Assembly: GCA_964019335.1 (NCBI GenBank)
Contig: OZ025731.1
Span: forward strand, 310,001 to 374,000
DNA length: 64,000 bases
Direction: 5' to 3'
DNA from: Diplonema japonicum
Taxonomy: Eukaryota; Protista; Euglenozoa: Diplonemea
This document shows positions 21,794 to 61,401 of the stretch, one piece after another. A program made the position numbers and the translations under genes. The notes under the pieces are model-generated. The model was given only the letters and a program-made list of their open reading frames with translations, had not been told where the DNA came from and did not search any database. Numbering within the stretch: position 1 is the first letter of the stretch; each line of letters opens with the position of its first letter.

Positions 21794-22117
21794 GAGTCGG
21801 CTGATTGTTTGTGCAAGCCGGTCATCTTTCTTGTGGACCTGCTTGAGACGGCCTCGTTGCCCAAGCAACCACATCTTGGGCAATGGAAACCCGTTTTGTG
21901 CTCCCGGTCGCACCCGGCAGCACAGTCCGGGTCCGCCGGCGCCGTGGGGGCCCCCTCCGGGTATAGTATAACCGACAACTCCGACGGGTCGATGTCTGCG
22001 CAAGCCATTTTTGTTTGTGCAAGCCGTTTTCACCTACAGTAGGGATAAACGGGCAAGCTGCCTCTACTCTTTTTTGCAATAACAATTCTTTTCAAAAGTT
22101 TGTTTACTTGTTCCAGC
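21794..22117 (-). mobile_element. T-run-flanked short element loaded with a Cys/His mini-ORF cassette
   Basis: 16-bp direct repeats (21805-21820, 22011-22026) bracket ORF MACADID..DCAAGCDREH..HCPRCG; the flanks align to the empty copy at 61272-61401. Confidence 0.8.
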
Positions 22118-22140
22118 AAAAAAAAAAAAGAAATGCTGCC

Positions 22141-22905
22141 ATGCTGACAGACGAAGCGTCCCAATGGCTCGATGAGCATAACCGTGTGCGATGCCAGTAC
22201 GGAGCGGCGAACGTGACGTGGAACAACACCATGGCAGCGGAGGTCGAGGGGATCTTGTCGAGCATTGGGTGTAGGTACAGCGAGTACAGCAGCGCATCGG
22301 GGGTCAACAGCTACTGGTCGGTGTACGAAACAAGCTCGGTCGAGGTGGTCAAGGCATGGGAGGCGGACGGTGACATGTACAATTTCACAAAGGGTATCTC
22401 CAGCGCAAAAGAGCTCACGTTTACACAAGTCCTGTGGAGGTACAGCACGCAAATCGGCTGCGCGTCGTGCGCCAACACATCAAGCTACGGTGCCCTCTGC
22501 CAGTACTCCCCTGCGGGGAACGTGAAGGGGCATTTCTCCAGCGCTGTGAAGCGTGCTCTGTCCTGCGACACGATAGTCCCTTCGCCGCCAGCCTTCGAGT
22601 ACAATGCAAGCTACATTGTCTTCACAGTTCTCTTAGGATGCCTGCTTCTATGCGTCTTGTCGATTTACTCTTACATTAAACTAACGTCTTCTGAAGAGCC
22701 TGCCATTCTCCATGCTGCGCATCATGGTGTCACTGACACACCCGATCTCGTCTTAGGAAAGAGCGGGACTGGGATGAAAAGTGCGCAGAGGGGGGCCACC
22801 GTCCCGGACAACGAGGAAAGCGAAGAGGAAGAGGAGGAAGAGGAAATTATTGAGCCGACCGAAGAGCAGCAACGCGAGGCGCCGTATCCGGTTGTCCCTC
22901 GGTGA
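22141..22905 (+). CDS. CAP/SCP (PR-1-like) domain protein with TM helix
   Basis: HNRVRC..W..., FTQVLW.YSTQIGCA, CQYSPAGN; TM IVFTVLLGCLLLCVLSIY. Confidence 0.88.
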   Translation: MLTDEASQWLDEHNRVRCQYGAANVTWNNTMAAEVEGILSSIGCRYSEYSSASGVNSYWSVYETSSVEVVKAWEADGDMYNFTKGISSAKELTFTQVLWRYSTQIGCASCANTSSYGALCQYSPAGNVKGHFSSAVKRALSCDTIVPSPPAFEYNASYIVFTVLLGCLLLCVLSIYSYIKLTSSEEPAILHAAHHGVTDTPDLVLGKSGTGMKSAQRGATVPDNEESEEEEEEEEIIEPTEEQQREAPYPVVPR

Positions 22906-23064
22906 AGAAAAAAAAAAAAAAAAGAAAGAAGCTTTTTTTTTTTTTTAAATGACTTTACAGTCTATGTTTTTGTCTCTCTTTCGTCCCCCCATCTTTTCTT
23001 CTTTTTGTTCACACATTATCCAGAGCGTGGAGGAGAGGGAGGAGAAAAAAAAAAAAAAATAATA

Positions 23065-24702
23065 ATGAGCTTCACGGCATTGACGCCAGCGGCGAAGACG
23101 CCGCTCGGCAAGCGAAAGGTCAACGAGCTTGTGACGGAGCCAAGCAAACGCCACCAACCGAGTTTCGACAGCATGTGGAGAAACAGCTGCATGGACGTGA
23201 CAAAAGAAGACGGGTGGATGTCCCTGTACACCGTCCCAGCGAAAGGCACCCGAAGCATCCAAGAGTTTGAAGAACTCACACTACGACGGATAGAGATGCT
23301 GACGGTTCTGCACCAAGAGGAAGGCTTGGAGAGGCTCTCGTACATGGATATTCTGAAGGAGATCACCGCCGCAAGCAAAGGGGAAAAAGCAACACACTGC
23401 AAAGGCGTCTTCGAATGGGTCTCCCCAGTTACCTTAGAAAGCACACTAATGACAGCCGAGTTCGGAATAAGATACGAAAAGAGAGTTTCGTACGATGAAA
23501 TAAAAACCGCCAAACGGACCAACACCTCTGGACTGTACTCAGCCAACGACGACGATGAAGGATTCCAAGCATACGAACGAGCATGGAGAGGCGAGAAGGT
23601 ATCCACTATCACCGATCTCTTCAACTCGGCGTATGAAGACGATTCCATTGCACACTGGGCATGCAGGTTAGCCTTCTGCGGCGAAGAAAAATGGAGAAAT
23701 TGGTTCTTAAAATACGAGGAAACACTTTTCAAGGGACGGGTCATGGGTCTATCGGTCTCTGACCAACAAACCCTTCTTAAACGCCACACCGGGCTCACGG
23801 AGACCTTGTGGACCTCGCTTTCGGAGGAACAGATAGAAACTCTCGCACTTATGGAGACCAAGTTCGACCGAACCGCTCGGAAGCAAACCGCAGCAGAGGT
23901 TCTCCGAAGCAAGAACAGGCGATACTATCTCGTGGATTTCACATCTGTCCCTTCATTGGTCAAGGACCGCAAGGTAGTTGTCTTCAAGGGTAAGGCGTTC
24001 ATCACGCACGAGCAGGCGATGGCAAAGCTCGTCGAGGCGTTCAGGGAATCCGTTACAAAAGGTCTACAGGACGCACTGCGTGCCCGACCGGACATCGCAG
24101 AACGGGAAAAGGACAGGGTATCAGCATTTTTGAACAAAGCAGTTTTGGAAAGTATGAATGTGGTCGACCGGAGCAGAGCGAAACAGGGGCCAGAAGCTGT
24201 TCTGGATATTGAGGATATTGGAGACCATTCGGCAATGCACTTTCCCCTTTGCATGCGGAGCATGGACAAACACCTCAGAGCTACAAGAAATCTAAAGTAC
24301 GAAGGGCGTTTTCAATATGGTGTGTTCCTGAAGCAAGCCGGGCTGTCTCTGGATCAAGCGATGAAATTTTTCAGCCAAACCATGACCTTACGAGTCACAA
24401 CTGCAAAGTTCCCAAAATCTGAGTACGGCTACGGTGTCCGGTCTTTATATGGTCGCGAAGGTAAGAAGACCGATTATACCGCGCATAGCTGTCACACATT
24501 GATTGTAAGCAAGGCACCCGGACCCGGTGCCTGTCATGGTTGCCCTTTCCGTCACACCCACGAGAGCAAGCTGAGGCCGATGCTTATGGAACCCCGATCC
24601 TTCCCTACTGTGAAGGGGAAGGAGAAGATCGTGCAGTTAAACAGCACTATTCAGCTTAAAGAAGCTCAGGTTCAAGATGTTATGAAAAGTATGGAATCGG
24701 GG

Positions 24703-24733
<31 letters not shown>

Positions 24734-24970
24734 TTAGAAGTATCAACGGGGCATATATCTGCTGCGTGCAGGAGTTACTTCAATGCCACACATCCTGGGT
24801 ATGTTTTTTTTTTTCCTTTTTTTTTTTTGTTTCAAAATAAAAATAAAAATAAAAATTAAAAAAAAAGGCACCCCGAAAATCATTCCTTTAGCAACCCTTT
24901 GGCATACTATCAGTCGTCCTTGGAGTATGCCAAGGAGAGGGCAGAAGAACAGACGAAAAGTAACGCTTAG
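23065..24970 (+). CDS. PRIM2: DNA primase large subunit, 3 exons
   Basis: HWACRLAFC, HFPLCM, GRFQYGVFLK, YGREGKKTDY..SC, CHGCPFRH; splicing 24689-24737 and 24799-24867 restores HISAACRSYFNATH and NPLAYYQSS. Confidence 0.93.
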
Positions 24971-25186
24971 ATTTTTTTTTAAACCTCCCCCCTATCCCCC
25001 CACCTCGTTGATATTTTTGTTCATTTTTCTCTTTCTTATTGTTTTGTCCTGTTTTTTTTTTTTTTTTCCCCTTTTTTTTTTTTCTCCCTCTCAATATATT
25101 TTTTTTTTTTTTTATTATTATCCCAAAAGAAAATCCAAAAAATATGTGTACAGATTTCTTTTTCTTTCTTTTTTTTTTTGTTTGTG

Positions 25187-25217
<31 letters not shown>

Positions 25218-25280
25218 TTATTATTTTCGTGTGTCTGCAAAAAAATAAAAAAAAAAAAAGGGGTGCGAACGGAAAGAACT

Positions 25281-25976
25281 ATGTCGGCAGTGGTAGATCT
25301 CACCGCACCGGGGAGGGCGGCAGCAACACATTTCGACACCGCTAAGCGGCCGAAGATAGGGTGGACACAAACAGAGGACAACATAGCAGTTATAGTACGC
25401 ATCCCAGGGGCGAAGGAGATCAGCGTATCCGTGAAGAGCAAGAGCATCAGCGTGCAGCTCACGGGAGAAGACGGCGTTCGGTACAAGGCCGTCATGGCCT
25501 TAACAGGAAGGGTGGAGGTGAAAGACGGGTCTTGGAGCTCGACCGTCAGAAGATTGAGTCTAAAAGTACAGGTCACAAAGGAAGCCGGATCAAAAGAAGA
25601 ATGGGAAAAGCTAGTCGACCTGCCTGCAAAGGACACGAAAAACTGGCTAGAATACGATTGGGACGCGCACAACGAGATAGAAGTTGACGATGTTGAACCT
25701 GATGAAAAAGAAGAGCCAGATGTGGAACCGCGAAAGAAGCGTCGGCCTGACGAATCTGACAAACCCAAGCCGGTTGAAACCAAAGAGGAGAAGCAGACCC
25801 GTTGGGTTGCGAAGCAAAAGCAGCTCCAAAAAGAAGCCGTGGAGCTCGCCAAACAACGCCCGGTAAAAGCCGCGCCTCTGCAGTTCACCTGCAGCCAGCT
25901 GCTTTCCTTGATGTCGTTTGTAGCGGTCTTCACCGCAATTTTCACGCACTTTGCAACAAGATACTTCATAGCCTGA
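25281..25976 (+). CDS. CS (p23/HSP20-like) domain protein with C-terminal TM
   Basis: WTQTEDNIAV.VRIP, K...WEKL..NWLEYDWD; hydrophobic C-terminus. Confidence 0.8.
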   Translation: MSAVVDLTAPGRAAATHFDTAKRPKIGWTQTEDNIAVIVRIPGAKEISVSVKSKSISVQLTGEDGVRYKAVMALTGRVEVKDGSWSSTVRRLSLKVQVTKEAGSKEEWEKLVDLPAKDTKNWLEYDWDAHNEIEVDDVEPDEKEEPDVEPRKKRRPDESDKPKPVETKEEKQTRWVAKQKQLQKEAVELAKQRPVKAAPLQFTCSQLLSLMSFVAVFTAIFTHFATRYFIA

Positions 25977-26307
25977 AAAGGGTGTCAGGGTAGGGGGTGT
26001 TTAGTTTTTTGGTGTTGGTTTTTTTTTTTTTTACTAGTTTTTTTTAATAACCCCCCCCCCCTCTTTTTTTTTACACTACATATCTGTAAAAACCTGTTGA
26101 TTGCTCCCCCCCCTCACACTTAACTTGGAAGATATGAAGCGTTTTTTTTTTTTTCTTAATAACACCCCTTCCCCCCCTTTTTTTTATAAAAAGAAAATAC
26201 CCCCTTCCCCTTCACTCTCTCACTCCCCACATATTTTTCCCCCCCCCCCCCTCTTTTTTTAATCCGCTGTTTTAATCAAAAAAAAGGAAACACCCCCCTC
26301 TTAAAAA

Positions 26308-27267
26308 ATGGACATATGGCTGTCAACAGAAGGCAGCGGGGAATCCCTTCTCGCGGACATTCAAGAATACGAGAGCGCGGGGGAGGTGTTGGAAAAAATC
26401 GGGAAAGGAGAGGGTTGGACGATGGTGGTGGAGGGGGAGGAGGTAGACCGGAGTATAGCAATAAGCCGGCTGGGAGTGGTGGGGGGAAGCGAGGTCATTC
26501 TAAGGCCTCAGGAAAGATACGAGATCATGCACGCAAGGAAGTTAGTGCAAAGCGGCGAAAGGTTGAAACAACTCGGAAAATTGTCCAGATCAACGGACAT
26601 CGTGGAATGCTGCTCGACACAGGACTTCATCATGGTCCGACAAATGTTTAAGTCCGAAACAAACACCCAAGAAGAACTCGATTGGGCTGAAACACTGTCT
26701 TCCTTCTCACACCCAAACCTCCTTCACGTTATTGGAACGTACAAATCATCAGGAATCCTGACAGAATACTGTCGAAAAGGTAGCGTTTATGAATTCATCG
26801 CCCACCAGCCTGATTTTAGCTCCGAAGAGTTCGGGGCGGATGTTATCAGGCAACTTCTCTCTGCGACGCTGCATGTTCACGAACAAGGTATTACCAACCT
26901 TGGCATCGATTTGCAAAATATTTTTTTTTCGGAGGACGAGGGTGTTTTCAAGCTAAAATTAAGATTTTCTGCGACGCCGTGTACACCGCCTCCCGAATAC
27001 TACTCTGGTCATAAAACAGGGCCTAGTATCGATATTTGGGCAATTGGGTGTCTTGCACACGAGCTGCACAACAGGGGTAGAACTTGTTGGTATGCAGGTG
27101 GTCCTGGGACCATCTTGTCGCTGAGGCGGGCCGTTGAGGCCGGAGGGGTCTCGATACCTGGTCATTTTTCACCATCCTTGGCTTCTTTTATCGCTTGTTG
27201 TACTGTCAAAGATCCGTCGCTGCGCGCAACCTGTGATCAGTTGCTTGATCACCCTTGGTTGCAGTAG
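26308..27267 (+). CDS. Protein kinase-like (probable pseudokinase) with Ubl-like N-terminus
   Basis: HPNLL, TEYC..GS, PPE, DIWAIGC, R.TCDQLLDHPW present; GxGxxG, VAIK, HRD and DFG degenerate. Confidence 0.8.
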   Translation: MDIWLSTEGSGESLLADIQEYESAGEVLEKIGKGEGWTMVVEGEEVDRSIAISRLGVVGGSEVILRPQERYEIMHARKLVQSGERLKQLGKLSRSTDIVECCSTQDFIMVRQMFKSETNTQEELDWAETLSSFSHPNLLHVIGTYKSSGILTEYCRKGSVYEFIAHQPDFSSEEFGADVIRQLLSATLHVHEQGITNLGIDLQNIFFSEDEGVFKLKLRFSATPCTPPPEYYSGHKTGPSIDIWAIGCLAHELHNRGRTCWYAGGPGTILSLRRAVEAGGVSIPGHFSPSLASFIACCTVKDPSLRATCDQLLDHPWLQ

Positions 27268-27834
27268 GGGGGGGAGAAGGAAATAAAAAAAAAAAAAAAA
27301 AAAAACCTTGAAGCATTCTTTTTTAAAAGAATTAACCTTCGGTTTTTTTTTTTTTTTTTTTTTTTTACATACAAAAAAAAAAAAAAAAAAAAAAAAGAAG
27401 AATAATAAATATATGGGGAACAGCAAAAAAAGTTTTATTTTTTTTTTGTCTTTGTTTTCAAATTTTTCTTTTTTTTTTCAGCTCGGTGAGCGCAAAAGCG
27501 CATACTTTAAAAAAGAATACGGTTTCATTTTTTTTTTTTTTTATATTCTACATCGACAGCTAAAAAAAAAAAAAAAAAAAAGAAAAAAAAAGCAGAGTGT
27601 GTTTCCCTCTCTTTTTTCTTCTTTTTTTTTTCTTTTTTTTTTTTTTTTTTTGGCTGGGTAAACATCTTCTATACTTGCATTTTCCCTCCCTGTCTCGCGT
27701 GCCAATGCCACCTAGTAAATAAAATCCACTCTGAAAAAAATCGGAACAAAGAGAGAGAAAAAGAAAAAGGGAATAAAAGAAAAAGAAGGGAAAACCTCAC
27801 AGCTACTGCTTTCCTCAGGGTAGAGTTTAATGCT

Positions 27835-27984
27835 TTTTTATTTTTATTTTTATTTTTATTTTTATTTTTATTTTTATTTTTATTTTTATTTTTATTTTTA
27901 TTTTTATTTTTATTTTTATTTTTATTTTTATTTTTATTTTTATTTTTATTTTTATTTTTATTTTTATTTTTATTTTTATTTTTA
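27835..27984. repeat. (TTTTTA)25 microsatellite
   Basis: Perfect hexamer tandem array. Confidence 0.95.
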
Positions 27985-28915
27985 TTTCCCCTCTTTCCGC
28001 TCTTTTCTACCCAGAGGAACTAACCTGTTATTGTCGAGAGTTTACCTTCTTTTTTACTTCCATCTCATTAAACAAAAAAAAAAAGAAAAAAAAAGTAATA
28101 ACGATAACTATCCAACACAAGCAAAACACAACGAAAGAAGGAGAAAACAAAGAAGAAGAAGAAGGAGAAATGGAATCCACCATGGCCTCTTTTTTTTTTA
28201 TTTTTATTTTATTTTTCTTTCTCTTCAAGGGGAACAAAAAACTGAAATAGCTGCTGAAGGGCAGCTTTTTGTAGTGAACCCTTTGAGTGAGCGATTTTTT
28301 TTTTTTTTTAATTTTGGCTTTGGGTTGATTTTCATTGTTTTCTTCTTTTTCTCTCTTCATCTTTTTTTTTTTTTTTTTTTCCTGGCTTCAGAGCGCAAGA
28401 CAACCCCCACCCCAACCATATCTAACCAATTTCCTTCTCCTCTCTTCCTCTTTTATTTCCCTTCTATTTTTTTTTTTTTTTTTTTTTGCTTCCATTCACC
28501 CCCACCTTTCTTTCGGTGCCCTTAGTACCATCAGCCATTGCAAAAAAAAAAGGGGGGGAGAAAAAAAACTGTAAAAAAACCTATCTTTTATTTGGTGAAT
28601 CGAAAACATACACCCCTCCCCCCCCTTTTTTTTTACAGTTATCTATGTTCTTAACAATGAAGAAAAAAGAAAAGAAAAACATGAAAGAAAAAAAAAAGAA
28701 GAAAAAAAAAAAAAGCTAGCGGCCGCATAGGCCCTCTTAAAGAATAAGAACAAAAAAAAAAAAAAAAAAAAAGGGTGTACACTGAAAATGGTGGGTTTCC
28801 CCCCTTCCCTTTTTTTTTTTTCTTTTTTCATACCTCCACTTCCCCCCGCTTTCTTATTCAAATATGCAGAACAAGGTGAAGGGTGGATACAAAAAAAAAA
28901 AAAAAAAAAAAAAAA

Positions 28916-29194
28916 ATGTCGGAGGAGCAGAAGGTTCACGTGGTCTGCAGTCTGGTGGATACGGCAAGCCATAAAATAATCTCAGAAGAGCACATGTTTG
29001 TAACTAGTACTCTACAGGCACTTAAGCAAGGGCTGGCTGTCCGAACGAATTTCTGTCGATTGGACTACTTAGATCACGAGGGGGATTGGGTCATGCTGGA
29101 GGAGGAAGAAGAGTGGCTCGTCTGCAGGCAGGTGTGCCCAAGAGAAGTTAGCATACGGGCTCATGTGAACCAGTGTGAGACTTCCTCTTTGTAG
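28916..29194 (+). CDS. Small PB1-domain-like protein
   Basis: LDYLDHEGDWVMLEEEEEW matches the PB1 OPCA motif. Confidence 0.7.
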   Translation: MSEEQKVHVVCSLVDTASHKIISEEHMFVTSTLQALKQGLAVRTNFCRLDYLDHEGDWVMLEEEEEWLVCRQVCPREVSIRAHVNQCETSSL

Positions 29195-29195
29195 A

Positions 29196-29231
<36 letters not shown>

Positions 29232-29321
29232 AAAAACCGCACACCCCACCTTTTTTTTTTTTTTTTTAAAGGATTGTGTGCAAGAAGAAAAATGAAAAGC
29301 CAAGCACGGTGTCTTTTTTCT

Positions 29322-30940
29322 TTAACCCATAACACTCCAAGGCGCAAATATTTGTCGTTTTGAAATCGTTTTTTTCTCTAAGTACTTTTTCGTCCCCACG
29401 ACCCCTGGATCTCCAAGAACGACTATAGTGAGGAGTTATTTTCAACTGCAATTAATGCTGCGCTGCGTCACTTTACCTTGTTATCCACCCACCAAGTGGG
29501 TCCCAAATCCGAGTAGATAGGCTAAAAACGCAAAATAACGGGTGTGCATACTGTGCCCAAATTGTTCCCAAAAAACGCAAAGGTAAAGTCAAAACAGCTA
29601 CGGACGAGGTCTAACCTTCATGGGTAAGGGAGTTGGTACCCATAGAGACCATACAATAGGCCAGTGGGGAGAAAAAAAGCTGTCCCGTGGTACGCAGAAA
29701 CCTGACGACGCAAAATGGTTATTCCTTTCGGTTTTTTTATAAGAAGCTCACAGACGTCATCCAAGAAGAGACAAACAAGCAAAAGGACGCTGAGATTGAT
29801 AAAATTTCGACCCAGGACTCCACCGCTTACTCGGATTGAGCATTGCGATGGGTTTACGGCGTGCCCAGAATCAGCAGTCGTATTGGTCCATAGGACCCAT
29901 GAAAATCCCCCTTTTCAGTAACACGATGCCCAGGAGACGCTACTGGGAAATCAAAAGTAGCCTCCACTTCACTCACACAGAAGAGTCAAACGGTGATGTG
30001 TTGTGAAGATACGAGGGTTTCTGGACAGAATTGGTGACAAGTGGGCAAAAGCAGCAGTGCCAGGAAAATAATTAAGCATTGACGAGACACTCGTACCTTC
30101 ACGGGGCAATTGGGGGGCTGCGGGTCTACTGTCCTTTCAAGCGTAAAAGATATGGCATAAAAATCTACTGCCTAAACTGCGCGAGCACGGGTTATCTTTT
30201 GCGTTTTCACATCCACGCCACCAAAATCGAGGGGCACGCACTTGAAGATTTCAGTGTTGTGGAAAAAGCGGGGCTGGGGTTAACAGAGCCTTTCCGGGGA
30301 AATGACAACACGGTAGTTTGCGATAGCTACTTTTTGACTGTGGGTCTGGCCGAAGCCCTGTGAAAGAACTGTGAGGGGCTTGCATTTCGTTGGGTGTTGC
30401 GGACTCTTCTGGTGGACCCTAGAAGACAATAGTTAACTGCCATGCACTTCAAATAAAATATGGTTCAGGGATGCCAAAGAGATACACAACCCTGTCTGCT
30501 TTTAAAGAGCGCTTTCGAGAGAGCCTAATTGATGGGTCCAGCGTTGCAAAAACACCACTCCCGGCACCCAACTAGTGGTGCACACACCCCCTATACCCCA
30601 GATAACACCAAACGTGACCGCTAGCCACTCAAAGGGGGCACCTCCAGGGCTGCCGTCACCCCAAAAAGGCCTCTTGACGATTTCGAGGCCGATATTCCAC
30701 CCGCAAATAGGCACTTCTCTCGGTCTGAGACATCTGAGGGGTCCTGATGCTGCCTTTTTGTCCCAGGATGCTCAATTTACACCCCCCCCCCCCCCGTGCA
30801 CAACCCATTTTGACATGGTCGTTTTTGAGCACCCTACGGCCATTCAACTCTTCACCCCCTTTGTATTTTTATTAATTTTTGAACTTTTTTTTTAATTTTC
30901 CTGGTCCAAAGAACCCGTTTTACCTGCAAACGGGGGTTAA
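29322..30940 (+). mobile_element. Degenerate piggyBac-like element; boundaries tentative
   Basis: Frameshifted transposase LSIDE..RVYCPFKRKRYGIKIYCL.CASTGY..VCDSYFLT (~30070-30360); TTAA-CCC at 29322 and GGG-TTAA at 30940. Confidence 0.7.
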
Positions 30941-31380
30941 ATGCTGCCATTTCCCCCCTCAAATTATGAAAAGGAGCAAAAAAGGGACCCCTATGTAGAT
31001 AGGCCCCGGAGTGTTATGGGTTAAAAAAAAAAAAAAAAAAAAAAAAAAGACACCCCTGCAAACTCTTTTTTTTATTTTTTTATTTTCCCCCTTCTCTTAT
31101 ATGTTTATTCTTTTTGCTACTTCTTCTTTTTTTTTTTTTTTTTTCCTCCCTTTTATTTACGCAACACCGGTATCGGGGCAAGAGGGGCACCTCCCCCCAC
31201 CTCCCCCACCCAGTACAAGGGCGGCGTTTATGCTATCTTAACAGCAGTATTCTATTTCCTATCCCCCTCCTTTATGTTTCCTGCTAAAACCGTATTTATG
31301 AAGTTGCGTGGAAATGGGCGAAGAAATATTACTGGGGGAGGGGGGGGAACCAATATCTCTTATCACCAGCCTGCCTCCAT

Positions 31381-31414
<34 letters not shown>

Positions 31415-31608
31415 TTTCCCGTCTGTTCTCCCCTTCTTTCCGAGTTACACACTTTTTTTTTTTTTTTTTTTTTCAAATGTTCATTCAACTGTATCCCACA
31501 ATACACGTCAAAATTTTCAAACAGTAAAGGGGAGGGAGGGGAGGGGGGAGAGAGGAAGTTATAACAAAAAAAAAAGAGAAAACGACTATAAAAAAAAGAG
31601 AAAAAAAA

Positions 31609-32888
31609 ATGAGTGAAGGTGTACCTCCGGAAACAACTGTAGCAGAGGTAGAACCACGGGGGGAGGTTCACGATGCAGGACATGACGAGTCGAAAAAATA
31701 TGATTACGGGGTGGCGGTCGAGGGAGAAGCCCCGCCACCACCGCCCCCTCAGCAGCCACAACCACCAGTGCCGGAACAGGAGGGACATGCGCCTGTCCCT
31801 TCCCCTCCCGCACAACCCTCGCCCGCTTACGACTTGAGCCATTATCACCAGTACCAACAGTACTATAACAGTCAATATGGACAGTACACGGCGGCGCAGC
31901 AACAGGCAGGCGAACCTGGGGCAGTGCGGCCACCACCGCCTGCTCAGCAGCCACCGCAACAACAACCACCACAACAAACCGCGCAAATGGATCCTGCCGC
32001 TTATGCAGCTCAGTACGAGCAGTACATGGCAGCTTGGGCATCGTACTACCAGTCTTCTGACCCTGCTGGTGCAGGTGTATATGCTGGATCAGCAGCAGCA
32101 CGGCCATACGCTGGGGAGAGTCTTTATGCAGGCGCGACCGTTAAACGGAAACTTGGTGGCGGTGGTGGCGGCGGTCCATCAGCAGCATCCCTAGCCGACA
32201 GACAACCTGGTGAAGGCAACCCAAACGCCGCCCCGTGTAAATTCTTCGAACGGGGAGAATGCAAATTCGGCAATCGCTGCCACAACCTCCACCAAGGCAG
32301 CGGTGGTTCCAAAGAAATCACCGCTTGCAGGGACTACGTAACATCACGCTGCCCAGCAGGCTGCACTTGCAAAATGCTTCATTATGACGCGGCGACTGGA
32401 CGTTCTGAGTACACCATAGCCAACATAGACAGAATCTCCGCTAGTATCGCGGCTAATGAGTGTCGGTTTTACATTGAAGGGACGTGCCGATTCCAAGAGA
32501 GGTGTTCTTTGACACATAATAGTGAAAAGGCTATGGAGTACCAGCAGGCAAAGGCAGCACTGAAAACGGTTCCGTGCCAAGCTTTTAGAATTGGAAAATG
32601 TAAGTTCACCGACGACCAGTGTGTTTTTGAGCACAGGATCGGGCAAGTATGGATGGGGGAAATTTTTGGGGAAAAAAAAAAAAAAAAATACAGGAATCCC
32701 CCGCCCTCATATCCGCTAACTCAACGCCGAGTTTTGTAGGTGGTGGGAGAAAGGCAGGAGGTGCCCCTTCAGCGCACCCTGCCATCCAAGCTGCCCCCCA
32801 ATATTCCAGTACCGCGCCTTACTCTATGGACCAGCAACCCGAGTTGAGTAATAGGGAAGCTTATCCGAGGGTTACCTCTAATGTTTAG
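31609..32888 (+). CDS. CCCH zinc-finger RNA-binding protein (4 fingers), 2 exons
   Basis: Four C-x7-C-x5/6-C-x3-H motifs; P/Q/Y-rich N-terminus; intron 32647-32693. Confidence 0.88.
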
Positions 32889-35162: not shown

Positions 35163-35201
<39 letters not shown>

Positions 35202-47438: not shown

Positions 47439-47480
<42 letters not shown>

Positions 47481-48250: not shown

Positions 48251-48282
<32 letters not shown>

Positions 48283-52108: not shown

Positions 52109-52162
52109 CACTTATACATTGTGATAAAAGAAAATGAGGGGGGGAAGCAAAAAAAAAAAGGA

Positions 52163-52381
52163 TTTTATTTCACGGCACTCTGAAGCATTACTTTCACCGC
52201 CGATTAGGTAGTTCCCAGCTCAGCTCTTTCTTGTACTCCTGTACATGAGGGACAGTTGGGTCGGTCTTACCTTTCTGGTACTTTGTTATATTTACCTAAG
52301 ATTTATTACTTTCACGGGAGACGGGCCATTAGTTCACCGTGAGGTCCCTGAGTGCGTGCAGTAATTTCAGAAGAGTGAAAT
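52163..52381 (-). mobile_element. Truncated member of the 57916/62357 family
   Basis: ttttatttcacggcactctgaa..ttcacc at the start and agtgcgtgcagtaatttcagaagagtgaaa at the end. Confidence 0.75.
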
Positions 52382-52903
52382 GTCTTTTAAAAAAAAAAAA
52401 AAAAAAAAGTGTGTGTCCCCCCCCCCCCCCCCCCCCGATCTCCCCCTTTTTTTAAGTTGTGAGCAGCAGTCACAACAAACACCAAAAAAGTTTAGAAGAA
52501 AGAGTTTTTGAAAAATGAGAAAAAAAAAAAGAATAAAATTAAAAAGCAAGGAACGCGGGAGAGCCTTGAGTGTGCTAGAATGGGAGAAAAAAAAAGGGGG
52601 GGAAGGCAAGAATTATATTAAAAAAAAGGAGGAAGAAAAGTTCCCACCTCACCCTTCAAGTTTAAATGCAAAATACCGGATTTTTAAGAAGTCACCTCTG
52701 TCGGTCAGGATTTTTTTAATTTATTTTTTTTAAATGGAAAATGGATAACTCTTCCGTCACTCAAAAGCCTCCCCACATGCGTACAACGAAGAAAAAAGAA
52801 AGAAAAAAAGGAAGAAAGAAAACACTTTAAAAAAAAAAGAAGAAAAAAGAAAGGGTGAAAGTATTACAGAAAACAATGTGTGCATTGTCTTCTTCTGTTT
52901 TTT

Positions 52904-52944
52904 GGCGATCCTGTCACATACTGCAGGTTCCCTTCAAAGACATC
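52904..52944. repeat. 41-bp dispersed T-flanked element, copy 2
   Basis: Identical to 10580-10620. Confidence 0.9.
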
Positions 52945-54119
52945 TTTTTTTTTCTCTTTTTTTTTTTTGGTCCATTCATGGGATGGTCTCATTTCCCCAT
53001 TTGCCCTTTTTTTCAAAATATTTTTCTCTTGGTTTTTTTGAGTCATTTTGGGCGCCTGACACCGTGTGGACACCGCTCTCCTGCCTCGTGTAATGAATGG
53101 ACTGACCTTCTTCGTTTAGTTCCAGTGCCATTACAGGAGTGTAGATTTTGGGCACGCAATTTTTTCTTTTTTTTTTTTCACCCCCTAACCTTTTTTGAGC
53201 CATCACAGTCAGAAAAACATAAGAAGAAAAAAGAAAAAAAAAAGAAAGAAAGAAAAGAAAAGAAAAGATCCACCCGGAGGGGAGTGGGGGAGGGAGGAGA
53301 GCTATTCCGTAAATCTTTTTTTTTTTCTCTTCTATTTATTATTTTTGCTGAGCGGGCTATTGGTGGAGACAAAAAAAAAGGGATATAATTTTTTTTTTTT
53401 CCCCCCAGAGGATTTGAGAGGGGTGGGGGAAAAAAAAGGGGAAAAAGAAAGATAAGATAGGGATCTTTCATGACCTTTGTAGAGGGTTTGTATTCATCAA
53501 AAGATAGCGTCCCCAGAGGGAAAAAAAACCCCCAGGGAAAAAAAAAAGAAATGCATGTCACCCCAAGCCTGCCTTGTTTTTCTTGTGTCCTCTCTCTCCC
53601 TTTTAATAGAATTAGAAAAAAAAAAAAATTAAGAATAAGAAACTGACGGTTCTTTTTTTTTTTTTTTTGGTTTCCTCTTATTCTCCCCTCTTTGTATGTG
53701 AGGTTGTAGCTTTTGTTCTTCCTTGTAGGCTCCGGTATCAAGGGAGAGTGCCCCTGTGGTTGTAGCTTTTTTTTTTTTTCTTACTTTCCTTTTTTTTTCT
53801 TAGCCCCCTCCCCTCCCCCCATCCTTTATTTATTCTTCGTATGGTCTGCAAACAGTCACTGGGTTCCGTTACAAGAAGGGGAAAAAAAATTGAAAAAAAA
53901 ATCTTTTTCTTTTTTTCTTTTCTTCCCGTCCCCCCCCCCCCATTTCCCCCACCCGTTTCTCCCAAAAAAAAAAAGATTACGGAAACACAACAACAACAAA
54001 AAAAAAAAAAAACCGCACAACACACTCACCCTTTTTTTCTTTTTTTTTTTCTTTTTTTCCTTTCTTTTCTTCTTTTTCGTCTTCTTGTTTTATTATTTTT
54101 TTTTTCTTTTGCCTCTCTG

Positions 54120-54341
54120 CATAGACCGAAGTCATTATGAGTCACAGGCCGATTGCCAAAATTATAGCAAAAACATCTTGAAAGAAAGCTTACACACATA
54201 CGGTTGTGCTTGTAGAGACCCGGTAGTTACAGTAGACCCCCATCCGTCCGGGTCTATTTCTTTCTGCGTCCGGGAGTTTGTCCGTCCGGGAATTTTTCTT
54301 GAGGGCCCTCTGGGCTTAAGAAAAACTGACTTCGGTCTATG
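54120..54341. mobile_element. MITE with CATAG termini and ~6-bp TSD
   Basis: 15-bp TIR catagaccgaagtca/tgacttcggtctatg; flanks tctctg/tctcta. Confidence 0.8.
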
Positions 54342-54402
54342 TCTCTATTAAAAAAAAAAAAAAAAAAAAAAGAGAAAAAGGCGGAGGGTGAGGGGGGTGA
54401 AC

Positions 54403-55029
54403 ATGACCGTGCAGCTCGGGCTGCAAGTCTGGGCTGCCATCCTGCTTGTTGCTTCAGGTGCCTGTCCGGACAGTGACGACCTGTATACTTCGCATTCGGA
54501 GTGCGCAGGTAAATATGAGACAATCTCTGAGGCTGAGCTAGAGGACTGCAAGGACGTCATATGCAGCATAATACCAGAAGGGAAGTTTGCCAGAGCCAAC
54601 GCATCATCCATGGTGGTGGCTAGGGACAACCGCGGGGGCTGCTCCCTGTTACTCTGGGACGGTTTTGGAACCGCCGTTTTCGTCTGCAAAAACTACACCG
54701 AGCAAGCCCCCATCTCAACCCCTGAGGCACCCTCTTCAGGAAGCCCTCAAAAAAAGTTTTTATTCATCTTTGGTGTCGCAGGATGCAGCTTTCTCCTTCT
54801 ATTAGGTGTCTGGTTCATCACAAAGCAAGCTAGGCAAACGGGCTTGAAGGAGTACTCATACACAACGGGGAAGAGGAGGAAGGCTGAGATTATGGAGACC
54901 TTGAATGTAAACCGCTCACCGGGAACAGAGGGGACGGATCCTGAATCGTGCGAAACACGCACACCTCCAAATGTGTATGTTCACCCGGCGCACCCTTACA
55001 CGCGACAAGTTGCGGAAGAGGCGGAGTGA
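54403..55029 (+). CDS. Type I membrane protein with Cys-rich ectodomain
   Basis: Signal peptide, 6 Cys, TM FLFIFGVAGCSFLLLLGVWFI, cytosolic tail. Confidence 0.7.
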   Translation: MTVQLGLQVWAAILLVASGACPDSDDLYTSHSECAGKYETISEAELEDCKDVICSIIPEGKFARANASSMVVARDNRGGCSLLLWDGFGTAVFVCKNYTEQAPISTPEAPSSGSPQKKFLFIFGVAGCSFLLLLGVWFITKQARQTGLKEYSYTTGKRRKAEIMETLNVNRSPGTEGTDPESCETRTPPNVYVHPAHPYTRQVAEEAE

Positions 55030-55232
55030 AATTGTGTTTTTTTTTTTTTTTTTTTCTTCTTTTTTTTCGGATAGGAAAACAGAGGGAATGCGCGCCAAGG
55101 AGGATGTTTTTGAAACGTGTCCACCCGCATGTTACAGACGAATGGCTTCATGGTGCTGAATTTTCTCGTTTTTTTTTTTTCTTTGTACTTTTTTCCCTCT
55201 CTCTTCTATCCTCTGCCAAAAGCACTTTTTTT

Positions 55233-55944
55233 TATATAACTCAAGCCGGGTTTTCAAGGGTGGGAGTGAAAATAAGATTTACTTTATGTCACTCCAGCTT
55301 TATTTTCACTCCTAGTTTACCTTGAAATTAGGCCCAGGAGTGAAATAATGCTCGAGCGTGAAATAATGTAACATTATTTCACTCCTGGGCCTAATTCCAC
55401 CTATTCCCCGCAAGATCAACGCCATCATCCAACGAAACTTCGGTAAGAAAATGCAGAACTTTCCCAGGGTTGCACTTCTTTTGAAGAAGGCCATGAGGTG
55501 AAAAAAGCTTCGGTGTTTAGTCAGGAACAAATGAAAGAGTATCTGGCAATGAAATTCAGCGACAACATAGTGCGTCAGGCATATGCAGCTTGCATGTTTG
55601 CAAGTGGGATGAGGACAAAAGAGTCGCACAAACTGAAATTTAGCGACGGTGTATCTCCCACACGCTGTAACCCAAATCCCACTTTTCACTTGTTGTAACC
55701 CTGTAACCTCCCACCCTTTCAAACCCGGCTCTTGTTAAATAAAACAACTTATTAGTGAAAATAAGAGCATTTTATTCCACTTGTGGTGGCAGGTTTAACT
55801 CGTAGCTTTTTACTTCACTCGCTGCGCTCGTGAAGTAAACAGGATATTAGTTCACTCGCTTCGCTCGTGAACTAAGATCCCTACTCGTTAAACCCCCTAC
55901 CACGCGTGAAATAATGCTATCTTATTTTCACTTACTAAATAGCT
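55233..55944 (+). mobile_element. Crypton-like tyrosine-recombinase element remnant
   Basis: Asymmetric IR (55238-55267 / 55708-55737); terminal hairpins with ttcactcgctgcgctcgtgaa; YR fragment 55412-55650 KKASVFSQEQM..FASGMRTKESHKLKFSD. Confidence 0.8.
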
Positions 55945-56056
55945 TTTTTTTTCTTCCCCCTCCGCCTTTTATCTCCAATTGTGTTAGGCCCTCGTCGAAA
56001 ATGCCATTCAAATGCGTGGTCAAAATTGTCCTTTTGTTGCCGTTGGTCATGCGATC

Positions 56057-56090
<34 letters not shown>

Positions 56091-56326
56091 GAGTCTTTAT
56101 TTTCTTTTTTCTTCAGGAAGGTCTGTGCCAGGCGGAGTAGGCACAGGCAGACCTCTCAAAAACAAGGGGTAACATGGATTACATTTGATTTCGGAAAAAG
56201 AAGAAAAAAAAATGTCCCCCACTATGTCTGAGAGGTGGCGCCGCACAGGTCAGAAGCTCACTCCAATGTCATCTGACAATAATTCTTAACGTCAGAAAAT
56301 CGTTGTTGTGGTTTAAAAAAAAAAAG

Positions 56327-56367
56327 TGTAGGTGGAAACGGCTTGCACAAAAACAATCAGCTGACTC
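56327..56367 (+). repeat. 3' part of an empty cassette-acceptor element
   Basis: tgtaggtggaaacggcttgcacaaaaacaatcagctgactc closely matches the two flanks of the 21794-22117 cassette joined at one repeat. Confidence 0.8.
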
Positions 56368-56442
56368 TTTTTTGAGCCAGGGACGCTGTTTTCAGATATT
56401 CGTGCAATTTAAAAAAAAAAAAAGGAAAAAGAAAATGTGGTG

Positions 56443-56694
56443 TGCTAACTAAACCCCTATGTTTTAGAAAACCCCCAAGTTTCTAAATGCCCAAATTAGA
56501 CCCCTAGGCTTTAAAAGTTGCCGGATATGCAAAAGGGAGAGAGAAAAAAAAAACCCATTGGTGAAAAATCATGCCTTTGTGACCCAAGAATGCCCCAACA
56601 ACTACTGGGATTCTTGGTCACTCAAGTAAACCCTTTTGCCTGTCTGTGAGGGGGTTGGTTTTAAATTTTCCCAAACTTAGGGGTTTAGTTAGCA
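56443..56694. mobile_element. MITE with 17-bp inverted repeats
   Basis: tgctaactaaaccccta (56443-56459) / taggggtttagttagca (56678-56694). Confidence 0.75.
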
Positions 56695-57915
56695 GCTTTC
56701 TCAAAAAAAAAAAAAAAAGTAGACTTGTACTCTTTGTTATGACGAGAAAAAAAGTTTTTTTTTTTACTTTACCATTTGCTTTTTTTCTTCTCTTTGTTCG
56801 AGCGAAAAAATACCAAAGTGCGAGACGAGTTTACCCTATAATAATTTTTTTTTTTGTTCAGAGATCAGAATCATCTGATGAATGTTCTCAACTGGGGGGG
56901 GTCCCCCCAAAGTGGGGAAAGCAAGAGACAATTCTTTGGGTTCTAGGTCCTCTGTTTTTTTTTTCTTTTCTTTTCTTTTTTTTTTTTTGCAATTTTGAAA
57001 AAAAAAAAAAAAAATCGGCACTTTTTTTTTTCATTTTTACAGTATCAGCTATATTTTATCTTCACAAACGAATGATGAAAGAAATTAATTCTATGTCACC
57101 CCTGAAAATAAGGTTTTTTTTCTTTTTTTTTTTTTTACTTCCCCCCCTCCTTTTTTTTTTCACCCCCGTTCCACAACGGAAATTCAAAATCACAGGAGTA
57201 TTAAAAAAAAAAAAAGAGACACCCTTACAAGTGAAGTTTAAAAAAAAAAGGTCCCTACCCCCCCCTACCTCTTTGTGTTTTTTTTGTACTTTACGAATAT
57301 ACCTCTAAGTCCCGTTTTGACCCTTCGTTAGGCCCCCCGTCAAAAAAAATTGGATGAATCTTGTTGTAGACCCGGCTGATCGTGAAGCCAGTAGCAAACA
57401 AGCGGGGTGTCCTTTTGTTGCACGAACAACCATCTCCGACAGACACTGTTGAAGGCATTGGCGTCCGTCTTGATGAGGATCGCAAGATTGCTCAATGAGT
57501 AGAGATGTGGGGAAAAAAAAAAAAAAAAAAAAAAAGAGGGGACAAAAAGTTAATCTTTTCATTACCTTCGTCAACGTAGATTTCTTTTTTTTATATTTTT
57601 TGTTTTTTTGTTTTCTTTGAATGGAAAAAAAAAAAAAAAAAAAAAATGAAAAGTAGTAAAAATAAACGAAAAAAAAAGGGAAGCGAATTTTTATAGCCCG
57701 CCATCTGAATCCAGATTGGGAAAGAAGAGAACTAAAAAGGGGTGGGGGGGAAAATAAAAAAAAGAAAAAGAAAAAAAAACCTTATTTTATGAATTACATG
57801 CAGCCATGAATCGAAAAAGAAAAAAAAAAAAAAGATATTAGGACCTCCTCCTCCCCCATCTCCCCTAATTAGGCCATTAAAAAAACAAGAATACCAAATC
57901 GCCGACGAAAGTAAC

Positions 57916-58596
57916 AATAGCTATTTACTAACAAGTAATGACTTTACCGTTACCTCGAGGTCGGTAAAGCATTACTTGGCGGTAGGTAAGTGGTTTTATT
58001 TCACGACACTCTGAAATTACTTCACCACGAGGGGCACAACAGGGTGACAAGGGGTACAACAAGAGAGGGGTTACAAAGGTTACAATACAAGTTGTTTTCC
58101 CTCCTTTTGTTGACTAAGAGCTGCCGCTGCCGCTGGCATTGCCACTGTCACCATCTCTAATCAAGCCTTCCCATACCTGGCGCGGCCGCTGGCTCCTTTT
58201 TTTCTGCTGCTTCGGTATTTTGAAGTCATTTGGGGAGCTTGGGTAAGCTGACTAAGTTACCCTTACCCACAGAAGAGTTACCCCCAGAAACTGGGAACAA
58301 GGCCTAGCCAAAAGTGGGCAAATTGGGAGGAAAAAGTAGTCCAACTTGGAACTGAGCCGAGGCAAAAGTTGGCCAATTGAGCTGAACCTGGGGGGAAATA
58401 GCAAACTGGGAGGAAAAAGTAGCCCCACTGGGAACCGAACCGAGGCAAAAATTGGCCTACCGAGGCATATTATTTAACGGAAACCCCCTATTACTTCACG
58501 GAAAACAGGCCATTATTTCACCCGTGAAGTAATGAGATTTAGCGTGAAGTAATGGGCCCCCCAGTGCGTGAAGTAATTTCTGAAGAGTGAAATATA
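57916..58596 (-). mobile_element. Non-autonomous element with asymmetric subterminal IRs and terminal hairpin (Crypton/Helentron-like)
   Basis: Hairpin 57932-57978; IR 57999-58025 vs 58568-58592; near-identical ends at 62357-62697. Confidence 0.8.
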
Positions 58597-58638
58597 AAAA
58601 AAAAATTGCCATGGCATTATGGCTTTTTTTTTTTTTTT

Positions 58639-58928
58639 GCAAGAACGAGTCTTTGACTTGTCTAAACAAAAGGGGAACGTTGGCAACGTGTTTCGGGTTG
58701 ACAAACTTCTCCAGGTTTTACCCGGCACGTACAAACAAAATGACGGCACTAGACTGGGATGATCTGGTCCAATACGCGGACCTCGAGTACCCATCGGGAA
58801 GCACTCGCGCCCCTCACCTCGCGGATTGCATCTTCGAGGAGTGCGACACCTCGCACGGTGACACTGCGGTTCACTGTGCGAGGTGTGGCGCTAAAGGGCA
58901 GGCACGTACAAACAACGGCCAGTTCCTC
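58639..58928 (+). mobile_element. T-run-flanked short element loaded with a Cys/His mini-ORF cassette
   Basis: 15-bp direct repeats ggcacgtacaaacaa (58724-58738, 58901-58915) bracket ORF from ATG 58740: YPSG..AP..DC...CD..H....HCARCG. Confidence 0.8.
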
Positions 58929-59316
58929 TTTTTTCTTTCTTAACTCTAGTTTCCGAAGTTTTAACCCCCAACCCAACACACCCGTTAGAATCAATGGACG
59001 TGGTGTTCGATAACTTTTTTTTGTTTTGTTTTTTTTTGCTTTTTTTTTTTGTTCTTCAATCCCCCCTCCCCGTTCCGCAAATTCAATACTACTTTTTTTT
59101 CTTTTTCTTTTTTTTTTCCCCAGTTACATCACCACCCTTGCATTCGCTTTTGCTCTGTTTCCGACCCTTTACCCGTACAGAAAGCAGATGAACTACAGGG
59201 GGGATACCTTTACCCCCCCCCCCCCCCCCCCCCGTTTGGTTGTCCCAGGCTGAACACTGGACCAAAAAAAAAGGGGGGAAATAAAAGAAAGGGGGAAAAA
59301 AAAAGAGAAAAAAAAC

Positions 59317-60147
59317 ATGAAAATCGCAGGTAAGATTTGCGCAGTGACAGGGGGTGGAAACGGCATCGGTGCGGCCATTGTGGAGGCCTTGTGCGAGAAG
59401 GGTGCGAAGGCGGTAATCGTGGCCGACATCGACATTGAAGGCTGCAGGCGTGTGGAGGAGTCCATGACGCAGCGCTACCCGAAAACCAAGGTCATCGTCC
59501 AAAGGTGCGACGTCACTAACGAGGGAAACATCAGGTCCCTGGTGCTGACGGCGAAGGTTCGATTCTTAAGAGGTATCGACCTCTTCGTGGCCAACGCAGG
59601 CATCACAGGGGGGTTCGGCGGACCAGAAGTGTCCAACAGGGAGTGGGAGGACATCTTCCAAATCAACGTAATGCACATAATTCAAGCCGCAAGGCACGCT
59701 CTCCCCGATATGCTTGCAAAGGGCGAAGGCGGTTTCATCATCACAGCCTCTGCCGCAGGCCTTCTCTCGCAGATTGGAAGCCTGCCTTACACCGTTACCA
59801 AGCGTGCAGCTGTGAGCGTTGCGGAGTGGTTATCCATTACGTACGGCGACGCTGGTATTTCCGTCTCATGTTTATGCCCTCAAGCAGTGGACACAAACAT
59901 GATTAAAGGTGCGCCTGGTGGTGGTGTTGCTGGTGTCGATGGTGTGCTGCAGCCTCTTCCCGTTGCACGCGAGACTCTCAATACTTTTGAGGACGGAAAG
60001 TTTCTTGTTCTTCCCCACAAGTCGGTTTCCGGGTATGTTAAAGGCAAAGCCAATGACCCTGACAAGTGGATCCTCGGGATGCGTGGGTTGATGAAAAGAT
60101 CGGGAGGCGGGCTTCTTATGCCACCCCGCCCAAGTGCTAAAATGTGA
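59317..60147 (+). CDS. Short-chain dehydrogenase/reductase
   Basis: VTGGGNGIG, FVANAG, TASAAG, YTVTK. Confidence 0.93.
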   Translation: MKIAGKICAVTGGGNGIGAAIVEALCEKGAKAVIVADIDIEGCRRVEESMTQRYPKTKVIVQRCDVTNEGNIRSLVLTAKVRFLRGIDLFVANAGITGGFGGPEVSNREWEDIFQINVMHIIQAARHALPDMLAKGEGGFIITASAAGLLSQIGSLPYTVTKRAAVSVAEWLSITYGDAGISVSCLCPQAVDTNMIKGAPGGGVAGVDGVLQPLPVARETLNTFEDGKFLVLPHKSVSGYVKGKANDPDKWILGMRGLMKRSGGGLLMPPRPSAKM

Positions 60148-60435
60148 GATTTTTTTTTTTTTTGAAAAATTTGTTTGTTTTTTGTTTTGTTTTTTTGTTT
60201 TCTTTAAAGCTTATCTACCAACGAGGATGTATTTTTTTTTTTTTGTTTTTTTATAAAAAGTAAAAACTTTTTTCGCTGAACAGGCTTTCGTTGTCCAAAA
60301 CTACGAATACCCCCCCTCCCCGTTGGTGGATGGTTTAAAAAAAGAAGGAAAAAAAGAAGGCACCACCATGCTCTGTTCTTTTTTTTTTCTTCTTCTTTTT
60401 CATTTTTTTTATTAACAATATTTATTGTCAAAGAC

Positions 60436-60476
<41 letters not shown>

Positions 60477-60731
60477 AAACTAGTTGATGGCAGCCGTAAA
60501 TTGGTTATTAAATACCGCTCGTGGGAAGAGACAAGGGGGGGGAAAAAAGTTTTAAAAAAAGATTTTTTTTTCCCCCCTCACACCCCCTCTTCCCCTCCCC
60601 CCTCTTTTTTTTTTTTTTTTACGATTTTTATGCGGCCTCTATATTTTGAGCTTCCTCCCACCTTGGAAGTCAACAGCAAAGTATAGATACACAAAATAAA
60701 AAACGTTATCATTAGGTAGTAAAGAAAAAAT

Positions 60732-61217
60732 ATGGGTTGCGGGCTGGCAAAATCTGCATCAGGCAGCGAAGTAATTATGAATGAGCCGTCTCCTCTCCAC
60801 TGCGCCCTGAGGATGAAACGGTGCAGCATAGTGGCTGGGCTGAAGATTGCCATGGCAAGGGACCTTTACTCGGATACTAGGAGCGCCTCCTCTCTGGAGA
60901 GCAGTGACAGAAGAAGGCTTGAGTCATGGGTAAAAGAAGTCCCTGCTTGCAGCAGTGACAGCGATGAAACGGCAGAATCACGAAGCGTCACTTCTGACGA
61001 AAGCTTGCACACAATTGAGGAAAATCCTTTTGTGCCCGAACCACTGCCGCCTGCCCGTTCGGGTTGTTGCCTCTCCCCAGTGCGGCTGACTACAAAAATG
61101 CAGCTTGTTGCCCTGGAGGAACACGGACGCCGGGCGTCCATTGCAACGTCCCCTCTAGATGTTGTTCTTCGGTTGCCACCTGCAGCGCGTAAGCAGCTGC
61201 CGCCTCTTCTTAAGTAA
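60732..61217 (+). CDS. Hypothetical protein with MGCG acylation-type start
   Basis: 161-aa ORF, A-run before ATG, dual-acylation motif. Confidence 0.55.
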   Translation: MGCGLAKSASGSEVIMNEPSPLHCALRMKRCSIVAGLKIAMARDLYSDTRSASSLESSDRRRLESWVKEVPACSSDSDETAESRSVTSDESLHTIEENPFVPEPLPPARSGCCLSPVRLTTKMQLVALEEHGRRASIATSPLDVVLRLPPAARKQLPPLLK

Positions 61218-61219
61218 TC

Positions 61220-61271
<52 letters not shown>

Positions 61272-61273
<2 letters not shown>

Positions 61274-61398
61274 ATGAACAAGAAAAACAATATATTGATA
61301 ATGAATTGTTATTGCTAAAAAGAGTAGTGGTAGCATTGTTGGGCTTATCATTCTACAGGTTAACCCCGGCTGTGCACAAAACAACAATCAACCGGACT

Positions 61399-61401
<3 letters not shown>
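61272..61401 (+). mobile_element. Full-length empty cassette-acceptor element
   Basis: gcatgaacaag..gaattgttattgc.aaaaagagtag..cggctgtgcacaaaacaacaatcaaccggactc between T-runs; colinear with the flanks of 21794-22117. Confidence 0.8.

Follow-up and report, generated by a model that had tools for sequence, protein, structure and literature searches.

Short repeat units of Diplonema japonicum as probable termini of VIPER-like tyrosine-recombinase retrotransposons

What are the short, repeated units that lie between runs of T in the genome of the diplonemid Diplonema japonicum? Four of them fall within the 64,000-nucleotide stretch analysed here (contig OZ025731.1, positions 310,001–374,000, or C84:310001-374000 in our numbering; hereafter the window), and in two of the four a short core sequence is duplicated around an insert that opens with a start codon. 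An earlier note on this stretch had left two explanations standing: (a) gain and loss of coding cassettes by site-specific recombination at the core, or (b) retroelements of the tyrosine-recombinase type that have lost internal sequence and retain a gag-like zinc-finger start. Searching the 62.5-Mb assembly, we found that the units are genome-wide repeats and that full-length elements with the same ends encode gag-like, tyrosine recombinase (YR) and reverse transcriptase/RNase H (RT/RH) open reading frames (ORFs), which reduces the finding to the second explanation. We put a probability of about 0.85 on the following joint reading: the units are the termini of ~3.9–4.1-kb VIPER-like YR retrotransposons, the recombinase integrates these at an oligo-T junction, and the deletions in the shortened copies predate integration. 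We see here a familiar kind of mobile element in a new host group, and no new cassette system.

Genome matches to the longer units are of two kinds: some follow the unit used as query from base 1 to a base N, which differs among copies, and resume only at the final 28 bases of the query, and others continue past the insert. In the continuing copies, family B has a 317-aa ORF1 followed by a second ORF, and family A has a 347-aa ORF1 with ORF2 immediately next to it. The layout that emerges is A1, ORF1, ORF2 (the YR), an overlapping ORF3 (RT/RH), B1, TTTTTT, A2 and B2, where A1 consists of a ~90-nt head and a 15–18-nt core, and B1 of the core and a 12–15-nt tail. In the 3.94-kb full copy on the plus strand of C82, A1 begins at 412167, ORF1 spans 412279-413273, the YR begins at 413277, the RT/RH region occupies 414952-415893 within a 656-aa open frame, and B1 (415953-415978) is followed by T6 and, at 416077-416102, by B2. 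For ORF3, the 656-aa frame must open while the 338-aa YR frame still has ~350 nt to run, so that the two overlap. A copy on the minus strand of C63 (C63:469805-473809) and a family-C copy on the plus strand of C25 (C25:632200-636331) have the same layout. Weaker matches show the gene order ORF1, YR, RT again on C11, C52, C73, C66 and C98. The genome thus holds at least four families of the element: those at C11:361566-365142, C52:77404-80966, C73:463209-466744, C66:288619-291864 and C98:363647-366740 are 26–41% identical to family A and, going by sequence comparison, make up at least a fourth.

The 3' end of the element explains the short units. In the three loci where it was read (L009, L041 and L066), the internal region is followed by B1, a short T run and a complete A+B unit, with a distance from B1 to B2 of 124 bp on C82, C63 and C49. 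Between B1 and A2, the four junctions of family A and the two of family C each have exactly T6 as spacer, and the only one of family B has T4. Because this spacer is constant whereas the outer T runs vary in length, A2-B2 is a part of the element and no chance neighbour. The 127-bp unit that the earlier note had called empty, and had likened to SIRE relative to VIPER, is indeed A+B and corresponds to A2+B2 of the full-length element; the loaded unit consists of element bases 1 to N and a constant B block of 28–30 nt, and its insert, far from being a bounded cassette, belongs to a much longer element, of which it represents the first N bases. A first look gave 452 candidates for the empty unit genome-wide, and the scored copies are 94–98% identical. 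Solo units far exceed full copies, with 111 exact or near-exact family-A tails in the genome against 4 internal junctions. Directly 5' of B1, families A, B and C also have a G-rich purine run (in L041, ~25 nt upstream of C83:429375; in L066; and at L009:1445-1462), which comes after TATATGG in families A and B, all three families having that or a similar sequence just 5' of B1; the run stands where long terminal repeat (LTR) elements have their polypurine tract.

The four units in the window belong to three families (A, B and C). The earlier note had placed all of them correctly, and each aligned as it had described. For the head motif TTTGCNNGAACRAG, the window holds three occurrences where chance predicts 0.1; copies A and B each carry their own 15–16-nt core twice, around the insert and in the variant peculiar to the locus, just as had been noticed, and copy C carries a single core. 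Copy A (family A) lies on the minus strand. Its head, the first part of terminal repeat A1 (22026..22117), starts with GCTGGAACAAG, ends in a pyrimidine-rich stretch and TAG/GT, and is 97–98% identical to the heads of the full-length copies L034–L037. The first core, GGCTTGCACAAACAA at 22011..22025, is the 3' end of A1 and common to B. It is followed by codons 1–61 of the gag-like ORF1 with its Cys/His finger (21825..22008), which are colinear with the full-length ORF1 to element position ~293; at C84:331811-332008 this part is 85% identical to ORF1 residues 1–65. A 5-nt filler, TGACC (21820..21824), separates the truncated ORF1 from terminal repeat B (21794..21819), which consists of the second core and TCAGCCGACTC; on the element strand, a T run comes next. 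TGAC also occurs at an independent junction in L053, and the filler may therefore originate from native sequence 5' of B1.

Copy B (family B) lies on the plus strand and shows the same architecture with a different cut. The head of its A1 (58639..58723) starts with GCAAGAACGAG and ends with CTCCAG/GT...ACCC, and the first core, GGCACGTACAAACAA, occupies 58724..58738. The first ~53 codons of the family-B ORF1 (58740..58900) are cut at element position 260–262 and joined, with no filler and 1 nt of microhomology, to terminal repeat B (58901..58928), made of the second core and CGGCCAGTTCCTC. The ORF1 start codons lie 1–3 nt past the first core, at 22008 (minus) in copy A and 58740 in copy B; their position right after the repeat had been seen before, with the spacing given as 1–2 nt. 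Both frames run open through the tail into the flank, and the absence of a stop inside the unit, noted earlier, stands. Copy C (family C; 61272..61401, plus strand) is a solo A+B unit, the SIRE equivalent, with its head at 61272-61365 and the B-equivalent block CCGGCTGTGCACAAAACAACAATCAACCGGACTCTC at 61366-61401; over its whole length it aligns with the A2-B2 that closes the full-length family-C element in L009. T runs lie directly 5' (61212..61271) and directly 3' (61402..61437) of it on the plus strand. Copy D (56327..56367, plus strand) is a 5'-shortened solo of the family-A type, of which the last ~41 nt are left (the end of the head, the core and the tail). Among Logan contigs over 56000-61150 we found no empty alleles, and other family members were re-found as joints only; extrachromosomal DNA, circle junctions and insertion polymorphism were likewise not seen in this contig-only material.

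The heads of the units share a further feature. Shortly before the core they end in a pyrimidine-rich stretch and AG/GT (22026-22040 on the minus strand, 58700-58716 and 61345-61358), and in families A, B and C the AG sits 8–10 nt 5' of the core, with the ORF1 ATG on the 3' side of the core. The end of the head looks like a candidate spliced-leader acceptor, in which case the core would lie in the 5' untranslated region. A trans-splice acceptor is provided by SIRE in Trypanosoma cruzi. At gathering scores, Rfam has no match in the window, and at E ≤ 1 the region 57700-59000 gave chance-level matches only; the head is therefore not a known ribozyme or small RNA.

The encoded proteins identify the kind of element. 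The full ORF1 products of families A and B are 27% identical over 274 residues (BLASTP, E 1e-18), which bears out the relationship that the earlier note had seen between the two inserted peptides; a Pfam scan of ORF1 gave a best match at E 0.73 and nothing else, and the Cys/His finger is unclassified. The C-terminal half of the YR, taken from homologues, carries HDIRH ... RH ... TRLY. Across 32 homologues, R82, H195 and Y204 of the catalytic set are invariant, K109 is nearly so, and HxxR is present in the consensus. Among 1.8 billion proteins, a YR profile search picked out 75 relatives; for PF00589 (Phage_integrase), several of these exceed the Pfam cut-off. A second profile search extends to proteins named XerD. 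The AlphaFold model built from the 32-sequence alignment has a predicted local distance difference test score (pLDDT) of 91, and its structural matches include XerH and Cre (E 3e-6) and extend, with XerA and IntI, to E 1e-4; an earlier model from a 7-sequence alignment (pLDDT 44) was unusable. Three ORF2 frames in the genome are open over all 338 aa of the YR and are 99–100% identical.

The RT matches RVT_1 at E 1.6e-4 over profile positions 1–184 of 205, below the Pfam cut-off, and aligns with the RT of Moloney murine leukaemia virus (E 1e-3), including motifs A and B; a metagenome homologue, P0111 (41% identity), carries PF00078. Motif C reads W-I-D-N and not Y-x-D-D in families A and C and in P0111 (L041:1889-2866 on the minus strand, L009:6-863, L028:973-1221 and protein P0111), the second Asp being replaced by a conserved Asn. 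Located 3' of the RT is an RNase H-like region in which DAS / KEL / CDN / DNPAD (D-E-D-D) is conserved in four sequences. This region gave a weak match to PF00336, the C-terminal domain of the hepadnaviral polymerase (E 0.04), and no match in a profile search of the PDB.

To learn how the loaded units are derived from this element, every copy in 90 loci was aligned to a long copy of its own family. Drawn from the best 40 candidates per search with queries of ~300 nt, the resulting junction table holds 34 deleted copies (18 of family A and 16 of family B) with ~30 distinct junctions. The internal region is ~3.7 kb long, and N falls within 135–350 in 30 of the 34; N=206 is common to three family-A copies, with 4 nt of microhomology there, and L083 and L085 are a segmental duplication pair. 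The 3' side of the junction is the B block in every case, such that the 3' breakpoints cluster within ~5 nt of a single site, and the 5' ones are scattered. CC precedes GGC in 27 of the 34 copies, compared with 8–10% by chance. Filler of 1–7 nt is present at 18 junctions, and the 16 filler-free junctions have a mean microhomology of 2.2 nt, compared with 0.4–0.5 nt by chance. In none of the 34 is the deleted copy followed by T6-A2-B2. Rearrangements of other types were seen in three copies only (L038, L066 and L070); L066 and L070 read through the 3' end, and A2-B2 is kept in L066 only.

Two other sources of the deletions were considered. Conventional splicing is unlikely, as the 5' borders share no common GT or consensus and splicing adds no filler, and recombinase action at pseudo-sites was rejected on account of the filler bases. 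A separate observation concerns a single copy on the minus strand, from C83:429343 in L041 (C83:427547-430843). It differs from L037 by 89 substitutions, of which 76 are C>T or G>A, 73 of these at CpG, and the bias is absent from three other copies; from its substitution spectrum, this looks like methylation-linked decay of one copy.

Three features lead us to place the deletions before integration: a chromosomal deletion would leave A2-B2 in place, conservative recombination and splicing add no filler, and a fixed end at B1 together with N falling off from the 5' core fits aborted processive synthesis. The deleted copies, and probably many of the solos, would then be by-products made during cDNA synthesis. 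The flanks suggest how they enter the genome. T runs flank 93 of 104 heads and 49 of 55 tails, they vary in length outside the elements from 4 to more than 60, and the oligo-T at the internal B1-A2 junction matches the T on both flanks. By analogy with the DIRS model, we infer that the recombinase integrates the element at oligo-T: a cDNA copy would be closed into a circle with B-oligoT-A as its junction, and the YR would recombine the oligo-T of the circle with a genomic T run, leaving T on both flanks and no target-site duplication. With T-run flanks, a duplicated T is indistinguishable from recombination within T. A crude, ORF-based count of orientation relative to host genes gave 26 co-oriented copies, 16 opposite and 43 unclear, with no clear bias.

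A more specific scheme, tentative and with somewhat less than even odds in our view, would account for the fixed and the variable end together. A DNA strand with its fixed end at the 5' edge of B1 would read through the B1-T6-A2 junction, move from the A2 core to the A1 core, and stop early in ORF1. Microhomology or added bases would serve to close the stopped strand, which would then enter the genome through its single oligo-T junction; a stop at the core would give a solo unit. Whether the nested series goes further and is the trace of a replication intermediate undescribed for any YR retrotransposon, a strong-stop-like DNA with the core as strand-transfer repeat that, on stopping early, forms a small circle and integrates at oligo-T, we regard as doubtful. 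If it were so, SIRE-type short units would be by-products of each replication round rather than parasites in their own right or remnants of decay. The VIPER literature leaves open how SIRE originated (PMC6681497).

The alternative that survives best, though we consider it improbable, is decay in place: all solos and deleted copies would once have been full-length, the solos arising when A1 recombined with A2 (or one core with another), as with solo LTRs, and the deleted copies through microhomology-mediated deletion in the chromosome. Direct repeats of ~107 bp (A1/A2) and 15–18 bp (the core) do flank the internal region, the excess of solos over full copies is what such decay would produce, and the junctions show microhomology. 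An internal deletion should, however, keep T6-A2-B2, which is found after none of the deleted copies; nor does this explanation fit 3' breakpoints that gather at one site while the 5' breakpoints are scattered, or filler bases as frequent as those seen here.

Several points weigh against the reading that we prefer, in which the units are ends of a VIPER-like element and the deleted copies arose before integration. The sample of deleted copies is biased and no census, and the element map was stitched from overlapping loci and coordinates. Membership of the VIPER/TATE group was assigned by layout and domain matches. Activity of the RT would not be assured given its WIDN motif C, and the putative RNase H is assigned from motifs and one weak Pfam match. 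The pre-integration model is one that we infer, and for the solo units A1 × A2 recombination in the chromosome is an equal candidate.

Two further explanations fare worse. It is very unlikely that the units are SINE-like parasites (SINE, short interspersed nuclear element), that is, short non-autonomous units copied by the LINEs (long interspersed nuclear elements) of the same genome through target-primed reverse transcription. They do sit between T runs, but a LINE-driven series would be 5'-shortened, whereas here almost every copy has an exact 5' end, the internal part is variable, and copy D is the only 5'-shortened unit in the window; moreover, the full YR element has identical flanks and an oligo-T within its own B1-A2 junction. 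Least credible of all, to the point of being nearly dismissed, is explanation (a), in which site-specific recombination at the core would load a short carrier with Cys/His mini-ORF cassettes and unload them again via a small circle, as in an integron-like system: the core is a direct repeat around extra DNA in both longer window copies, each family repeats its own core variant and the long elements encode a recombinase, but every insert among the genome copies is the 5' part of the same ORF1 cut at ~30 positions, with no second kind of cassette found, filler at more than half of the junctions is not added by conservative tyrosine recombination, and the full element itself has the core on either side of 3.7 kb of gag-YR-RT.

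The surroundings of the units in the window also deserve mention. Homopolymer tracts are very common between genes across the window, and C runs (~20 and 8 bases) lie beside the A/T runs that flank copy A, at 21712-21750. Just 5' of copy B, at 57892-58600, contig coverage is 100–1000 times that of the surroundings in all four runs, and on account of this coverage we take the segment to be another very high-copy repeat; Rfam is blank there. The long ORFs of the window are almost all on one strand.

Relatives of the element are found beyond this genome. A D. japonicum transcript in the EukProt set is 100% identical to the recombinase of the element over the aligned part, and relatives are present in D. 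papillatum, D. ambulator, Rhynchopus euleeides and Flectonema neradi, the closest after D. japonicum being D. papillatum proteins. The YR matches that bear names are diplonemid or bacterial only. The recombinase homologues P0006, P0019 and P0022 and their cluster members come from ENA metagenome contigs of 4.0–4.3 kb, about one element length, and relatives seem to be common in marine samples. A literature search found no account of these diplonemid elements: diplonemids are outside the scope of the VIPER study, and the D. papillatum genome paper merely lists 'TATE'-like ORFs among transposon proteins.

If our reading is correct, the range of VIPER-like retrotransposons, known from kinetoplastids, widens to include diplonemids (five species, and many contigs from marine metagenomes), and the subgroup would be at least as old as the last ancestor that kinetoplastids and diplonemids shared. 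With copies that are young, transcribed and in part intact, diplonemids would be a system in which to study a poorly understood replication cycle, and the deletion series offers a testable clue to the origin of SIRE-type short units. For genome annotation, the hundreds of 127-bp units and the 'mini-ORFs' should be masked as repeats and not counted as genes.

The closest known systems are the VIPER and TATE elements of kinetoplastids, with which the diplonemid element agrees in every structural criterion tested. VIPER/TATE encode a gag-like ORF, a YR and an overlapping RT/RH ORF between split repeats of the form A1 / B1-A2-B2 (PMC6681497, PMC12278014), and both the gene order and the split direct repeats A1 ... 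B1-A2-B2 recur here. The YR alignment of Trypanosoma cruzi VIPER is 338 aa long, as is the open YR frame of the diplonemid element. SIRE consists of A2+B2, and VIPER/TATE insert without target-site duplication (PMC6681497, PMC12278014); in D. japonicum too, the short unit is A2+B2 and far commoner than the long element. A target-site duplication is not evident beside the T runs, which would mask a duplication of T. The RNase H of VIPER-like elements groups with that of hepadnaviruses (PMC6681497, PMC12278014), and the diplonemid element gives a weak signal that may be of the hepadnavirus type. The differences are that the host is a diplonemid and not a kinetoplastid; that the A repeat is ~107 nt and the B repeat 26–32 nt long, compared with repeats of 173 and 219 bp in T. 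cruzi VIPER; that A and B overlap in the 15–18-nt core, giving three cores per element; that the N terminus of ORF1 has a longer Cys/His pattern in place of the CX2CX4HX4C box; that motif C of the RT is WIDN; and that the copies are placed strictly in T runs.

Ngaro/PAT-like DIRS elements share with the diplonemid element the split direct repeats A1 ... B1-A2-B2, the coding of YR and RT/RH, and a presumed circular intermediate whose junction is templated by the internal B1-A2 junction. In these elements the YR lies downstream of RT/RH, whereas in the diplonemid element it lies upstream, as in VIPER/TATE. Integrated DIRS elements are flanked by the short sequence of their circle junction (PMC7192593), and DIRS-1 resembles the diplonemid element in carrying this sequence on both flanks, with oligo-T taking that place here. 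The flanking sequence is a fixed trinucleotide in DIRS-1 and a homopolymer run of variable outer length in the diplonemid element, and DIRS-1 has inverted repeats and an internal complementary region.

A last comparison, with solo LTRs and with the strong-stop DNA of retroviruses and hepadnaviruses (R, DR1/DR2), is one of mechanism only. The diplonemid element has no primer-binding site, tRNA primer or LTR, unlike the systems in which these by-products arise. In each case a short repeat stands at the points where the template is changed, a part that the core might play in the diplonemid element, and the commonest copies would be by-products that retain the ends only.

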